Of a stretch of DNA of 64,000 bases, positions 8,664 to 17,039 are shown piece by piece. The position numbers were made by a program, and so were the translations under genes. The notes beneath the pieces are model-generated. The model was not told the origin of the DNA and made no database searches. It saw nothing but the letters and a program-made list of their open reading frames with translations. This DNA is from Basidiobolus meristosporus CBS 931.73 (taxonomy: Eukaryota > Fungi > Basidiobolomycota): contig MCFE01000356.1 in NCBI GenBank assembly GCA_002104905.1, positions 23,931-87,930 of the forward strand, written 5' to 3'. Within the stretch, counting starts at the first letter, position 1; each line of letters begins with the position of its first letter.

Positions 8664-9506
8664 CTACTGGGCCTTGGGTTTGGGATATTCCTCCCAGGAA
8701 ACATACGGAATCAGACATAACAGATAGTGAAGCTTAGCTTTATGTCCTAGCGTTTCCTGACGATCAACCAAAATGAGTAGACACAGACAATAGAGCCCTG
8801 CCGATACCATGGCATGCCAAACGGCGTGGAATTGTGGGTTGAAAGGGAGTATTGTCGAATTCCCCAAAGCAGCAGCAACGTGACCGTTCAAATATCGGCA
8901 GAAGTTGAAGTCGGTGAACCAGATAAGCATTGCTGACACATACATTCCAATTCCCAATTCAAAAAGCCTCTTCACAGTGGGGGAGCCATGGCGTTTGCTG
9001 AGGTAGATTTTCAAAATCATGGCTCCGTCCGTCAGCTCCAAGCTTGCGAAGGTGAAGTGGAAGAAATAAAATTGGACCTTTCCGGAGAATAGGGACACGA
9101 CAGCGGTGACTAGTGCGGTGTAGACACCCAAGATAATTGGGAACCATCCACTGACATTCGGGTATTTGTTCTTAACCAAACAATAGAACAGAACAGCGGC
9201 AGTCCAGCACATTGGGAGCTCGTCTAGCATTTGTGTTTCGTATTTGAGGGTCCCATGGAACAAAAGGCTTCCCCAGCCAACAACGGAGATTAAGCGGAAG
9301 GCAAGGCGATACCTAAATTCTGACTTCGGATGTAGCCAGGCACCAAGTTCGCCTATCACGACCATGGCTAAAGACGAGAAGCTGTTGAACATTTCCGCGA
9401 CGTAATAGCTATATTCATAATTCGTCTCGCACCAGTCAACCGAGGAGGTGGCAGCCCCCCAGTAGCCAGGATAGCCGAGTATGGTACTTTCTTGAGACAT
9501 TGACAA
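8664..9506 (-). CDS. Alkaline ceramidase (Ypc1/Ydc1/ACER family, CREST superfamily), intronless
   Basis: GYWGAATSSVDWCETNY, AEMFNSFSS, GSLLFHGTLKYETQMLDELPM, HAVWH motifs; 7-TM hydrophobic pattern. Confidence 0.93.
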   Translation of the reverse strand: MSMSQESTILGYPGYWGAATSSVDWCETNYEYSYYVAEMFNSFSSLAMVVIGELGAWLHPKSEFRYRLAFRLISVVGWGSLLFHGTLKYETQMLDELPMCWTAAVLFYCLVKNKYPNVSGWFPIILGVYTALVTAVVSLFSGKVQFYFFHFTFASLELTDGAMILKIYLSKRHGSPTVKRLFELGIGMYVSAMLIWFTDFNFCRYLNGHVAAALGNSTILPFNPQFHAVWHAMVSAGLYCLCLLILVDRQETLGHKAKLHYLLCLIPYVSWEEYPKPKAQ

Positions 9507-10045
9507 AAGGACGAGATATTGGTGGTCAAGTTCTCCAGCTGTCTATTTTATACGATTGTCGCCTCGGTTCGGGACAATTGGTCGCATATGAAAAATGGAT
9601 CCAGAATTTTACATTTGGAAGTCAGGCAGTGATTCGGCATCACGAATACCAATTACCCGACAATCCCTGTTCTAAATGGAGGAAACAGTGACCGAGTGTG
9701 TGTGTTGAGTTAAGCGTTCGCGTTCTCAAGTCCAATCATGTGAATTCAATCTAAACGGGCCAAGATGCATACGAAATCTACTCCATTCCAGCCGAGACGG
9801 AAAGATATACTAAATTAATTAGTGATTCTGATGAAAATTTTCTTGGCCTGTTCCTGAATAGATTGCCATGGAATGAAGGTTTGACGATGAAGTGACTGTT
9901 TAAAAACAAGGGAAGCCTTTGAAAAGGGGGGATATCAGGAACGATTAGGGGAGTGACTGCAAAAGCGAAACCAAGTGTTCAAAAATGCTCTAACTTTCTC
10001 AAGGAGCTCCTTGAATTCCTTCCTTCTTTCACCGTCACGGTGAAT

Positions 10046-11954
10046 ATGAGTAGTGCTCTAAATTGGTCAGATCTTGGTCATACTCTGGTGGCTTTAACAA
10101 CCACACTAGGGGTGCTCGCGGTATTGGGAAACATCCTTTATCTGGTAAAGCATATTGGAAGTGTATTCAGTAGTGTGTGCTTTCAAAATAATCAGACTTC
10201 TCTAGCTACGAAAGTTTTTGACTGATCCGTTGCGGGAAATACCTAGCCCGAATTGGTATGAATTAGTATTGTTGGATACAAGAATATGGCTATACAAGAG
10301 ATTCTCAAGGGAAGAGATGAATTACAGCCATTTACACACTAGGCTTGGGCCCATCGTTAGAATCGGTATTGTTGTTTTTAACACGGTATTGAAGTCGGCT
10401 TAGTTTATAACTCTTCTTTTCCGGGAACCTACTTCCTAGGCATGAACAGAGTCTCGATTGCTGATTCAGTGCTTATTAAACATATCCTTCAAGACAAGCG
10501 TTTGAAGGCAAGAGAGTTAAAGTAAGTGTATCATCGGCAACAGACGTATGCATCCGTTAGGACTAATGGAGTAAATTATTCCGAAAGCTCGCACATGGGC
10601 GTGGTAAGTGACAGATTTTCTTAGGACATCGAATTTCTCCTCATGCTCCAAATCCATTTGAGTAGAACGAGCTACAATACATGTTTGATGACAAGTGCTG
10701 TTTACCAATCGAATCTCGGATAAGCACAGTAATTGATAGGCTGTTCAGCACTAAAGACACCTCGCATGCGATCATTGACCGGAGAGAGGTGATCAGTAAA
10801 TTGGTGTCTGACATCATCGTGACGGTTGTTCTTGGATTGGATTCTAAAAAGCTGACCAAGTATCGCTACGAATATATTGTCAATCTGATTCACGAAAGAA
10901 GGAAGTGGAAAAATATAGTAAGGCATATGAATCATTTGGTCAGGTGGCGATGTTAAAGTATTCTCATTGCTAGTTGCGCAGTTATCCAGCTCTTACCTGG
11001 ATTCCATATGCACCGATCGAAGCAACCTTCCGTACCTGTGATGAGGAGTTAAAGCGGGTAAATGGATTTTTCATAAAAGGCCGTGGATACAAACAAACAA
11101 ACAAACCAATGCACACTTTCTTGACAGAAAATCAAGGCTCTTGTTGACGAAGCCGAGCCGAGCCGAGCTCAGGCGAGGAGCATCATAAATATCTGCGTGG
11201 GGAGAGCTAAGTCCAAGCAAATCGAAAGCGACCAATTTACCGAGGAAATTCTGATGTTGATGTAAGAGCAGTCAGGATACCCTAACATGTGTTGCACCTC
11301 ACCCCTAAACCCTCACGCCAGGTCCAATATAGAGGACATCTTATCCATTAGTTTGGCCAGCGCCTTTGAATCGATTCTCCATGATCCAACGACGCTGCAT
11401 AAAATCGAGGAGCAAATCGCACTGATTATCAGCGACGAATACCAGAAGATAGACCTTTCGAGCTCCTCAAGGAAAAAAGTGACATTTGAAGAGAAGTGCA
11501 AGGCACATCTGCTGAATTTTGAACATCTCAAGTCCATAGAACAACTCCAAATGATCGTTCAAAAGGCAATGGACTCTGCCATGCCAAAGGACCTTCAAAG
11601 AACCACGAGCTATACACCATTTCCGGTCGGGAAATACCATTTGCCTAGAAATACCGAAATCCGAATCCCGTTCAAGGCATTAGATCTGCCATATCCAGCA
11701 AACCCCTCAGAGCCGACTTCACTAAGTTCAGCTGAACTTATGCATTGTTTAAGTCATCGGTAATAACCCTTTGTGGACTCCGCCATCCTAGTTAGCTAAC
11801 TGTTCATTTGTGTAGATTTGTGAGCTGCATTCTCCAGGATACCCTGGCTGGTCTCATCACCAGGTATCGCTTGGAGCCATACAGGAGTCATCATATTGCG
11901 GTGGGATATCGAAGATACATCAGATTCACCAGACGCACCAAGTCTTGCTTGTGA
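10046..11954 (+). CDS. Highly divergent cytochrome P450-fold protein (467 aa, 9 exons) lacking canonical catalytic motifs
   Basis: Exons 10046-10144, 10206-10365, 10440-10521, 10588-10603, 10666-10917, 10974-11057, 11128-11261, 11322-11759, 11816-11954 are all phase-compatible with no internal stop. N-terminal TM anchor, DPLREIPSP, HTRLGPIVRIGMNRVSIAD, J-helix ILHDPTTLHKIEEQI, VGKYHLPRNTEI, and terminal CLSHRFVSCILQDTLAGLITRYRL. Confidence 0.75.
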
Positions 11955-12193
11955 TTGTGCTCGTTGAGACCTGAATCGTGGCATTTATTTATTGAACCAA
12001 TTGCTGCAGAGAGCAGTGTCAACTGAGAAAGATCGGGAGATGGTGATTTGCTAGCTACACATCACGACCAATTAACCAGGGGAAACGATGGCCATTGGAA
12101 GATTGTGATTAATTCAATTGCTGCAAAAACCAAATAAATCATGGATTGCTCCTATTTTGTTCGGGCCAAACCTGTCTTGAACTAAAGCAAAGT

Positions 12194-13418
12194 ATGCAGT
12201 GTCAAGAGACAGGAAAAGCCAGTATACATTCCGGTCTAACTGCGGAGCAGTTAAAGAGCCTACAGTTGATATGGCTCGAACTCCTTCCGAAGCTTCGGGA
12301 GCACCCTCACAACCAAAACCAATCAGCTGAAGACTCTGGCTTGAGCAGCGTGGAGAAGGCGTTTTGGAAAATTGTCCTGTTTGACCATCCTGATAGTATA
12401 CTGCTTCGCTTCCTACGCGCGCGTAAATTCGATGTATCAAAATCGTGCGAAATGCTTCTGAACGCGTTGGACTGGCGTTTGGAGGAGGATGTCGAGAGTA
12501 TCATAGAAAAAGGGGAAACCGTTCTAAACCAGAGGCTGCTTCAAGATGGCCTGACTCATTTCCACGGCCGAGATCCTCATGGGCGCCCGTTGTGGTGAGT
12601 GGGTTTTGCACAAAAGTGGGTTTGCCTTTGGTAACCTTTTCCTAGTATAGCATATGTACACCACTGGCATCCAAAAGCTCAGAGCTTACAAGAGCTCAAG
12701 CAGTACGTTATTTGGACTTTGGAAACCGGTAGATTATTGCTTGATGACGATAAGGATGGGAAAGTGTCTGCTATCATCGACACTAGTGGATTTAACATGA
12801 GCAAAGTGGTAAGGTGGACAGTAGATGGAAAAGCAAATCTCGTGGTTAACTCAAATGGAGTGTAGGATTTCTCCGCGGCCAACTTTCTGGTCAGTTGTAT
12901 GGAAGCATACTATCCCGAATGCTTAGGCAACTTGTACATAGTAGAGGCACCCTGGGTATTTTCAGGTTTGTGGGTGGCGATTATTAGAGTGACACCTGTA
13001 CTAATCATGACTAGGTTTCTGGAAGATGATTTCGCCACTGCTTGATCCGGTCATCAAATCCAAGATCATATTTTGCAAGCGGAAGGAGCTGAGCAATTAT
13101 CTGGAACCAGAGCAATTGATGGAGGCGTTTGGAGGGAAGGATCCGTACAAATATCACTATATCCCGCCATCTGCCGAGGAACTTGGAACCTCCGTATCAT
13201 CCAAGGAGAAGTCGCAGGCGCATGAGGCTTTTTGGGAGGCTGGGAAAGCTTTTGCCCATGTCACTGAAAAATGGGCCAACAACCCAGCAAAATACGATCA
13301 GGAAAGACAAGATGCGGCTCGTGACCTGCGAAAGGCCGGTTTGAAATTACAGCCTTTTATCAGAGCCCCAACCTTCTATCATAGAATCGGAGCTATCCAT
13401 GAAAAAAGCGCACTGTAG
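12194..13418 (+). CDS. CRAL-TRIO/Sec14-family lipid transfer protein (Csr1/Sfh-like), multi-exon
   Basis: DHPDSILLRFLRARKFDV, GRDPHGRP, EAYYPECLG, WKMISPLLDPVIKSKIIF, FGGKDPYKYHYIPP. Confidence 0.9.
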
Positions 13419-14865: not shown

Positions 14866-17039
14866 ATGAGTCATTCAAACATCACTACTGGGCATCAGCA
14901 AAATTGTCAATTAGACTCACAATATCATTACACTTATTCAAGAGTTCAATCTACTGGCAATACACACAAAGCAGTCATTTACCCACAATCCACGCAGCAA
15001 CCTCATATAGTACAACCTAGTGGGCTTGCGGCTTATCAAGATCGAAAATTTCCTCAATTTATAAACAGCAACATGGAGTCTCTGCTATCCGTTATTGATC
15101 ATCCTCCACCCATTCCTATACATCACTCTCGGGTCATGAACGAAAACAATAATCCGTTCAGGCCTAACAATTCGAAACCCCCGACACATGTTATCCGGGG
15201 TCCTCAATATGACGATCTTTCTGGCTCTATCCCGGAGCGCACTTCGTCTGCAACCATGTCAATATCGGCTATCGTCGACACCATGTCCCCACCAATGATA
15301 AACAACTACTCGCCTAGCAGAAACTTGCCGGTTTCCTCGATGCTTTCTTCAAATTTGCCGATGCCCCAATCTGCTCACCCATACTACAGCGTTCCTTCTT
15401 TTCACCCTATCAATTCTCCTGATATCATCCAATATCCACAGAGCAGCATGCTGCCCACTACACCCATCACCGATAGTTACTATCACAGCCCACAAACTAG
15501 CCGGAAGCGAAAAGCCTCCTACAGTTACGAGGAAGCACACATGAATCAGAGTCTGAAAATCCAGAAGCGGATAGGCGATAGGATTTTGCCGGTGACCGAA
15601 AGCCATGGCTCGAACCCGCAAACATTCTTGTCGAATATGACAAAGATTACCTGCTGGCATGCTTCCGTAGCTCAGAAATCCTACGGCACTGAGAAGCGAT
15701 TCCTTTGCCCACCACCAGTAGTTACAGTTCATGGCTCGAGCTCCGCTGAGAAGCCTCAGTTGAGCATGTCGGTGATTTGTGAAGCTGGCGCCGGGCCTGG
15801 GCAATTAGAACAGAAAGCCATGCTGGATGAAAACCACAGTGGCACTTTTAAGTATCTGCATGTTAGTGGGACCGCCAAAGCTAAGCAATTTGCCCTAAAG
15901 TTGAAGGTAATTAACCCGGCAGATCGAAGCTCCCTACGGGTTGTGGTATTAACGTATTTATTTTCAACCCTTAGGTTTTCAATAACAAGAGCCCAATTCC
16001 CCACGCCACATTTGATTCCTCACCCATATCCATCATATCGAAACCATCGAAGAAAACCTCGAAAACAAGAAATGTTTCTTCTTGTATATTCTCCGGATCC
16101 ACTGTGTCCCTCTTCAACCGTATAAACTCTCAGACAGTTCGCACAAAGTATATGGGCATTGAGTCTGGAATGCTCTGCGCCAAAAACTCGACCTGGTCAG
16201 CATTCTCGATCACTCTTGTGGATTCCCCACCCTCTGATACAGGCAGACCCATGCTTAATTCCCCCATTACATATGGCTCACAAATCATTCTGACTGATAC
16301 TGCAACCGGTTTTTGCTCTGACCCCCTGATTATCAGGAAGGTTGAAAAAGGGAGAATTGCTCAAAATGCTTCAGGCCCCGTGAGCCAGATGCAGAAAGTT
16401 GCGCTACAGAAACTTGATGATACCGGTTCTGGTGTGATGATGTACCTCTCGGCTTCCAGCTCTCCCAGCGATCAACATGATGCTACCACTGGGTCCAACC
16501 CATTTCTCTCGTACAAGCGGGCCAAGGTTAATGCACACGGCATCGATATACTGGATCCTTCTAACCTCATCGAAGAGGTAGACGATTACTTATCATGGAC
16601 CATAGTAGGCATCTCCAAATTCGAATACAACTATCTGGAGAGCCTTGGTCCTACTACTCGGCCCATCACACCTTTCCCATCGTTGAGTTGCCCAGCAATA
16701 TACAAGCCTAACACCAATACGTTGGAGCTTACCATTCGTCATTTCCATGCACATGACCAGCCACTTGAGGTATGGCTTGGGAACCATGGGCCACTCGATA
16801 TTCGTATCATCTGGCCTTCAGTCGGCTCGGTGGTTATGAAGGGACATGAAACTGTTCTGGTTGCACATCTTCCCAAACACGAGGAGTTATTTGGGGCGAA
16901 TTACCGTCACCTCCATGAGCCATTTCTCGAGCTTCCGCTTCTCTTTGTGCGTGATGATGGTCTTGTATATAACGTATGTCAGTCTCTTCGCTATGAGCAG
17001 GAGCGGCATGGAAGACCCAAGTCGGTCAAAGTACTCTGA
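14866..17039 (+). CDS. CSL-family (CBF1/Su(H)/Lag-1; fungal Cbf11/Cbf12-like) transcription factor, 2 exons
   Basis: CWHASVAQKSYGTEKRFLCPPP, ISIISKPSKK and SLFNRINSQTVRTKY DNA-binding motifs; beta-trefoil region (SQMQKVALQ, WTIVGISKFEY); intron at about 15908-15973 restores the frame; long low-complexity N-terminus. Confidence 0.93.

Follow-up and report, generated by a model that had tools for sequence, protein, structure and literature searches.

A stretch of 64,000 nucleotides (nt) of the Basidiobolus meristosporus CBS 931.73 genome (contig MCFE01000356.1, positions 23,931-87,930), referred to here as a whole as the window, carries at positions 10046-11954 of the forward strand a nine-exon gene for a protein of 467 amino acids (aa) that is related to cytochromes P450. 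It is maintained by purifying selection and is not a pseudogene in decay. Together with an orthologue and a paralogue in Basidiobolus ranarum it forms a family which comparison of the three members shows to be selected, P450-derived and, at the level of sequence, devoid of any heme-thiolate signature. It is best read as a pseudoenzyme family so far known only in Basidiobolus.

Relatives in Basidiobolus

Outside searches were performed with single exons of the window gene or with the B. ranarum proteins, while the joined 467-aa protein was used for alignment, hhalign comparisons and substitution counts. When exon 8 was compared with 1.84 billion cluster representatives in an exhaustive phmmer search, only two true relatives were recovered, both from B. 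ranarum, namely P0001 (514 aa, 51% identity) and P0002 (411 aa, 47% identity). The latter is a short isoform of the 518-aa protein P0005, a B. ranarum paralogue. Amino acid identity is 51% between the window protein and P0001, 40-42% between the window protein and P0005, and 47% between P0001 and P0005. Both B. ranarum proteins are named hypothetical protein at NCBI and 'Cytochrome P450' in UniRef.

The P0001 gene (locus L001) is flanked by ceramidase (minus strand) and CRAL_TRIO (plus strand) genes, followed by a gene for a CSL-type transcription factor. The order in the window is FHA, ceramidase (-), P450-like gene (+), CRAL_TRIO (+) and CSL factor (+; LAG1-DNAbind/BTD/TIG), and because this order is common to the two loci P0001 is regarded as the syntenic orthologue. 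The P0005 gene is located in a second, paralogous block (L002), head-to-head with a ceramidase gene and near a CRAL_TRIO gene.

No further members of the family were found in a metagenome scan with the exon 8 alignment, and exon 8 had no related locus in a contig collection comprising bacteria and archaea only, a blank that is uninformative for a fungal gene. Word-index searches with the whole of P0001 and with its residues 25-135 returned only P0001 itself, the second from 43 candidates. A word-index search with the family profile added fungal P450 N-terminal fragments and one canonical P450 (E 2.1) and missed P0002 and P0005, so that blanks in this index are weak evidence.

Catalytic motifs and the axial position

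The positions of the catalytic motifs were assigned by profile alignment to P450s, in which the strings described below fall on AGxxTT, ExxR and the Cys loop. The counterpart of the I-helix motif AGxETT reads N-I-E-D-I-L in the window protein, N-I-E-E-T-L in P0001 and N-T-G-E-N-L in P0005, and only the acidic residue is kept. The counterpart of the K-helix ExxR, aligned to E-T-L-R, is K-A-M-D, K-S-M-D and R-G-V-D, respectively, which is a charge swap in all three proteins. A first-pass annotation of the window had read SNIEDI and KAMD in place of these two motifs; both strings were located and aligned, and the losses prove to be common to the three proteins.

The region of the C-helix that carries the H/R contact to the heme propionate falls in an alignment gap. 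Compared with P0008, a canonical fungal P450 of 521 aa (Pfam p450 E 5.5e-71), the B'/C region is shortened, and the window protein lacks 10 meander residues that both B. ranarum relatives have, which bears out the earlier description of these two regions as reduced.

The Cys loop reads …AELMHCLSH… in the window protein, …TEFAHYTSQ… in P0001 and …TEFTNYTSQ… in P0005. FxxGxRxCxG is absent in all three, and the canonical heme motif occurs in no frame of the window, L001 or L002. The Cys of the window protein is residue 418, encoded by TGT at 11746-11748, and Tyr (TAC, TAT) occupies this position in both B. ranarum proteins. The first-pass description of the loop SSAELMHCLS as retaining nothing but the Cys thus stands with regard to the loss of the motif, but not in treating the Cys as a conserved survivor. 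Since the paralogue P0005, which is the outgroup to the window protein and P0001, also has Tyr, this residue is likely the ancestral one at the axial position. The Cys of the window protein is probably a secondary change by a single transition (TAY to TGT) and not a relic.

Conservation within the family peaks in exons 5 and 6 (62-68% identity), which encode helices E, F and G. It is also high in a family-specific insert (…VTFEEK.K.HLL…) between the J and K helices, in LPRNTE(I/L)RIP and in the L-helix.

Descent from P450s and predicted fold

In an hhalign comparison, the alignment of the three family members matched P0008 with a probability of 96.1% (E 3.4e-9, score 73.5) over 338 collinear columns, extending from the hinge to past the K-helix. 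The reversed alignment scored 16.4 against the same target, and 40 column shuffles reached 20.7 at most. The window protein alone matched P0008 with a probability of 87%. When compared with a profile built from 81 bacterial P450s, which had been gathered by a DNA pattern for the heme loop, the family aligned over 306 collinear columns (P 1e-3) with a score of 34.2, the best of 30 shuffles reaching 19.7. A hosted hhalign run gave an E value of 6e-4. The Pfam model PF00067 scored 21.8 bits on P0005 over profile positions 7-310, which is below the cut-off of 22.8.

The ESM Atlas provided further evidence. Compared by features, P0001 had p450 clusters as all 30 of its nearest clusters (score 0.97), with fungal CYP53-like clusters of Ascomycota first, and exon 8 of the window gene alone likewise gave 30 p450 clusters out of 30 (score 0.93). 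The single-sequence model of P0001 in the Atlas (predicted template modelling score, pTM, 0.63) was superimposed on P450 models with a template modelling (TM) score of 0.65 in both directions across 421 aligned residues. The evidence for the fold rests on this model of the orthologue together with the profile alignment. The descent of the window gene from P450s can on these grounds be regarded as established, and its orthologue is predicted to adopt the P450 fold, in agreement with the earlier reading of a recognisable P450 scaffold.

Gene structure

The nine exons were rebuilt exactly as first read, including a 16-nt microexon, and when spliced from the window they give 1404 nt, corresponding to 467 codons and a TGA stop codon, with no stop or frameshift. 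All eight introns are of the GT-AG type with GTA-type donors and are 56-74 nt long. The window is eukaryotic DNA and has a G+C content of 46%. When the B. ranarum proteins were mapped back onto their loci, both genes were found to have nine exons with boundaries matching those of the window gene.

Exon 1 (10046-10144, 99 nt in all three genes) contains the start codon and the N-terminal transmembrane anchor, residues 13-31 (10082-10138), which is the sole strong N-terminal hydrophobic segment (mean Kyte-Doolittle 1.9). Exon 2 (10206-10365), 160 nt long in all three genes, encodes the DPLREIPSP hinge (10224-10250) and the beginning of GPIVRIG; the exon aligns with SPLRTIPGP...YGPVVRLGPN of P0008. 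The block GPIVRIG/MNRVSIAD spans exons 2 and 3 (10347-10465), and exon 3 (10440-10521, 82 nt) encodes MNRVSIAD and the beta-1/B-helix region. The microexon, exon 4 (10588-10603), is also 16 nt in the orthologue and 19 nt in the paralogue. Exon 5 (10666-10917, 252 nt) covers the D/E-helix region, has 62% identity to P0001 and contains the strongly conserved block VLGLDSKKLTKYR (10828-10866). Exon 6 (10974-11057, 84 nt in all three genes) encodes the F/G region and is the most conserved exon, with 68% identity to P0001, while exon 7 (11128-11261, 134 nt) extends from the G-helix up to the start of the I-helix. Exon 8 (11322-11759, 438 nt) carries SNIEDI (11323-11340), KAMD (11563-11574), LPRNTEIRIP (11641-11670) and SSAELMHCLS (11725-11754). 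It is a single uninterrupted open reading frame (ORF) from the I-helix through the Cys loop, and therefore contains no hidden exon that could supply the missing motifs. Exon 9 (11816-11954, 139 nt) encodes the remnant of the L-helix (…LAGLITRYRLEP) and ends with the TGA stop codon.

An alternative exon 4 of 43 nt, starting from the in-frame acceptor at 10561 and adding nine residues, was rejected, because it would leave an intron of 39 nt, the shortest of the gene, and because the orthologue has an exon of 16 nt after an intron 3 of 66 nt, the same length as intron 3 of the window gene. The acceptor at 10561 may mark an alternative isoform (10561-10603), although the 39-nt intron disfavours it.

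Selection on the gene

Between the window gene and that of P0001 the nonsynonymous rate (dN) is 0.37 and synonymous sites are saturated; across the comparisons dN ranges from 0.37 to 0.45, and the synonymous rate (dS) is 1.3-3.8 or not computable. Identity of this pair at codon positions 1, 2 and 3 is 0.64, 0.74 and 0.43, respectively, and the divergence at third positions is comparable to that of the neighbouring ceramidase, with an identity of 0.46. Orthologous introns align with 57-74% identity at best. At sites where both B. ranarum genes agree, changes in the window lineage are distributed over codon positions 1, 2 and 3 as 0.28, 0.18 and 0.54, a third-position bias like that of the P0005 lineage, which points to purifying selection on the window copy itself. 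Of the 219 residues common to the two B. ranarum proteins, 141 are kept in the window protein. The nonsynonymous rate of the P450-like gene is about three times that of the ceramidase (dN 0.37 versus 0.12). The earlier view that the intact reading frame reflects selection is therefore supported by the existence of an orthologue, by the dN of 0.37 with saturated dS and by the concentration of changes at third positions.

Proposed function and alternative explanations

The explanation that we favour, and consider fairly likely, is that a selected gene derived from fungal microsomal (class II) P450s now encodes a P450-fold pseudoenzyme which is anchored in the endoplasmic reticulum (ER), lacks heme-thiolate chemistry and is probably non-catalytic. 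The N-terminal anchor, proline hinge and helical scaffold of a microsomal P450 are kept, and the window gene, its B. ranarum orthologue and the paralogue have all lost AGxxT (now N-[IT]-[EG]-[DE]), ExxR (now [KR]-x-x-D), the C-helix contacts and FxxGxRxCxG. The axial residue was probably Tyr in their common ancestor and would have returned to Cys only in the window lineage. The protein is expected to reside in the ER membrane, without thiolate binding of heme and without hydroxylation of a substrate. It may bind a hydrophobic ligand where the substrate was once held, or else stabilise or control a partner enzyme in the manner of the bacterial P450-like proteins DesVIII and EryCII (see below); a role as lipid sensor or scaffold is pure conjecture. 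That conservation is strongest in helices E, F and G and the J-K insert rather than around the heme is consistent with a shift of function to the distal, membrane-facing side.

Several observations weigh against this explanation. The family consists of three known members, all from one genus. The Pfam p450 model gave no match on seven exon or ORF pieces of the window gene, including a 158-aa ORF spanning exon 8, or on P0001; phmmer found no P450 for the window exons or P0001; and no P450 chain was returned by sequence searches of the PDB with the family profile (E up to 10) and with P0005. AlphaFold2 models of P0001 and P0005, obtained from six- or seven-row family alignments built without P450 rows, which would have forced the fold, had predicted local distance difference test (pLDDT) values of 36 and 39, respectively. 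The Pfam and PDB results would suit an ordinary P450 with a wrong exon model, or a chance resemblance without P450 kinship. Such an origin is nevertheless hardly credible, given that exon 8 is uninterrupted and the heme motif is missing from every frame of the three loci, that the independently annotated B. ranarum models agree with the window gene in structure and in the motifs lost, and that the P450 homology is far above that of the shuffled controls, with Atlas features and structure in agreement. The window copy also evolves about 1.8 times faster than the orthologue (78 versus 43 unique replacements; relative-rate chi-square 10.1) and differs from both relatives by four in-frame deletions or truncations, of 9, 10 and 10 residues and a shorter C-terminus. 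These features could indicate that it was recently inactivated and is decaying with its frame still open, only the B. ranarum genes being functional. The same might be concluded from the public record, in which protein searches returned no protein from the window locus and an exact look-up of the 278-aa ceramidase of the window in a gene-position index found no record; however, public annotation of this genome may be absent or different at the locus. Recent inactivation appears quite improbable, since the 1404 nt contain neither a stop codon nor a frameshift, none of the 16 splice sites is damaged, every length change is a multiple of three, and changes at second positions (0.18) are as rare relative to those at third positions (0.54) as in the P0005 lineage. 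In view of the faster rate and the four deletions or truncations, the constraint on the gene is considered genuine but of moderate strength, with some relaxation possible in the window lineage.

A further point against the loss of heme chemistry is that the axial residue, whether Tyr or Cys, would in principle be able to ligate iron. The family might then still consist of heme enzymes with Tyr or Cys ligation, catalysing a reaction independent of O2 and of a reductase, such as that of an isomerase, a peroxygenase or a catalase-like enzyme. In this case the presence of a potential ligand in each protein (Cys, Tyr, Tyr), the good conservation of the L-helix behind the axial site and the persistence of D or E for the acidic residue of the I-helix acid-alcohol pair in all three would be explained. 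We consider a heme enzyme unlikely, because all three proteins have lost the Phe, Gly and Arg of the loop together with the ExxR pair and the H/R contacts of the C-helix, whereas enzymes of the CYP74, CYP8A and CYP5A families keep the Cys, the loop and ExxR. The meander is moreover deleted in the window copy, and Tyr and Cys are separated by one transition (TAY/TGT), so that their occurrence at this position carries little statistical weight with three sequences. The isomerase or peroxygenase activity that the first-pass annotation had named as one option is weakened in particular, because thiolate-ligated heme would be needed and the axial Cys occurs in the window copy alone, with Tyr in both relatives.

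For the favoured pseudoenzyme, the neighbouring ceramidase provides a possible context. A ceramidase gene lies head-to-head beside the P450-like gene at all three loci, despite saturated synonymous divergence. The connection to sphingolipids that this arrangement may indicate is a lead only, and the adjacency, to be counted with the points raised above, may be mere inheritance from the duplication of the block. It can be imagined that a heme-free, ER-anchored family with the P450 fold, restricted to Basidiobolus, binds a sphingolipid or another lipid in what was once the substrate cavity and regulates or escorts the divergently transcribed ceramidase, which would make it the first eukaryotic counterpart of DesVIII and EryCII; this more specific scheme is speculative and unlikely.

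Comparison with known P450-fold proteins

The Basidiobolus proteins resemble fungal microsomal (class II) P450s in having the transmembrane anchor, the (S/D)PLRxIP(G/S)P hinge, the GP(I/V)VR(I/L)G...VS..D block and collinear D to L helices. They differ in the absence of AGxxT, ExxR, PERF and FxxGxRxCxG and in the unconserved axial Cys, as well as in the shorter B'/C region, the extra J-K insert and a PF00067 score below threshold.

In CYP74 (allene oxide synthase), CYP8A (prostacyclin synthase) and CYP5A (thromboxane synthase), atypical P450s that require neither oxygen nor a reductase, the I-helix is modified and has no conserved Thr. These enzymes retain heme, the Cys ligand with its loop, and ExxR. 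The Basidiobolus family shares with them the I-helix without a conserved Thr, but differs in lacking a conserved Cys ligand and the loop.

DesVIII, EryCII, AknT and TylMIII of actinomycetes have the P450 fold without a heme-ligating Cys, are inactive as P450s, and stabilise and allosterically activate a glycosyltransferase (PMC3391682). The P450 fold without an axial Cys is found in the Basidiobolus family as well, in which two of the three members have Tyr, while the window copy has Cys. Unlike the Basidiobolus proteins, DesVIII and EryCII are bacterial, soluble and about 400 aa long, and in place of the transmembrane anchor they carry an additional N-terminal helix. No sequence link to them was found by the family-profile search of the PDB, in which the solved structure of EryCII is represented. 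The genes of DesVIII and EryCII adjoin that of their own glycosyltransferase in antibiotic clusters, whereas no glycosyltransferase gene adjoins the P450-like genes in the window, L001 or L002, where the neighbours are ceramidase, CRAL_TRIO, FHA and CSL factor genes. The heme site has therefore been lost independently in the two groups.

Full-text literature searches found no account of a eukaryotic P450-fold family without the Cys, or of the Basidiobolus family. The family had been put forward as an undescribed kind of fungal pseudoenzyme, which holds in so far as no paper on it was found, but P450-fold proteins lacking the Cys are known in bacteria (PMC3391682). The kind is thus already known, and it is the eukaryotic, membrane-anchored version that is new. 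In a study of the CYPome of the related fungus Conidiobolus, P450 sequences without ExxR or CxG were treated as fragments or pseudo-P450s (PMC6032100). Sequences lacking ExxR and the Cys loop are usually discarded in P450 surveys; here they constitute a selected family with conserved introns. The family would give a eukaryotic example of the P450 scaffold reused without heme-thiolate chemistry, and a natural setting in which to see what the fold still requires once the heme site is gone, conservation having shifted to helices E, F and G. The finding is of modest scope, comprising three genes of one genus known from their sequences.

Genomic context

Upstream of the P450-like gene, on the opposite strand, the window encodes a divergently transcribed alkaline ceramidase of 278 aa in a single exon (8667-9500, minus strand; Pfam PF05875 E 1.7e-52), and the two start codons are 545 bp apart. 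The three intergenic regions between ceramidase and P450-like genes were searched for shared promoter words, and the one common 8-mer was taken as chance. Downstream lie a CRAL/TRIO (Sec14-like) lipid-transfer gene (12146-13418, plus strand, approximate ORF bounds; Pfam CRAL_TRIO_N and CRAL_TRIO) and then the gene of the CSL-type transcription factor (LAG1-DNAbind/BTD/TIG_SUH; 14866-17039, plus strand), in the same order as in L001.

The block of ceramidase (-), P450-like (+) and CRAL_TRIO (+) genes occurs twice in B. ranarum, at L001:1875-7279 and L002:5688-14643, and corresponds to 8667-13418 of the window. The ceramidase copies of the two B. ranarum blocks are 72% identical and saturated at synonymous sites, and the pair is therefore attributed to an ancient duplication of the segment or of the whole genome. 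Between the P450-like gene and CRAL_TRIO, L002 has genes for Far-17a/AIG1-like and Ser_hydrolase proteins. The P450-like gene of the L002 block (L002:8001-10134; GenBank K7432_004617) is annotated with two isoforms of 518 and 411 aa, the latter starting inside exon 3, which suggests transcript-based annotation and would be an indirect sign that the paralogue is expressed.

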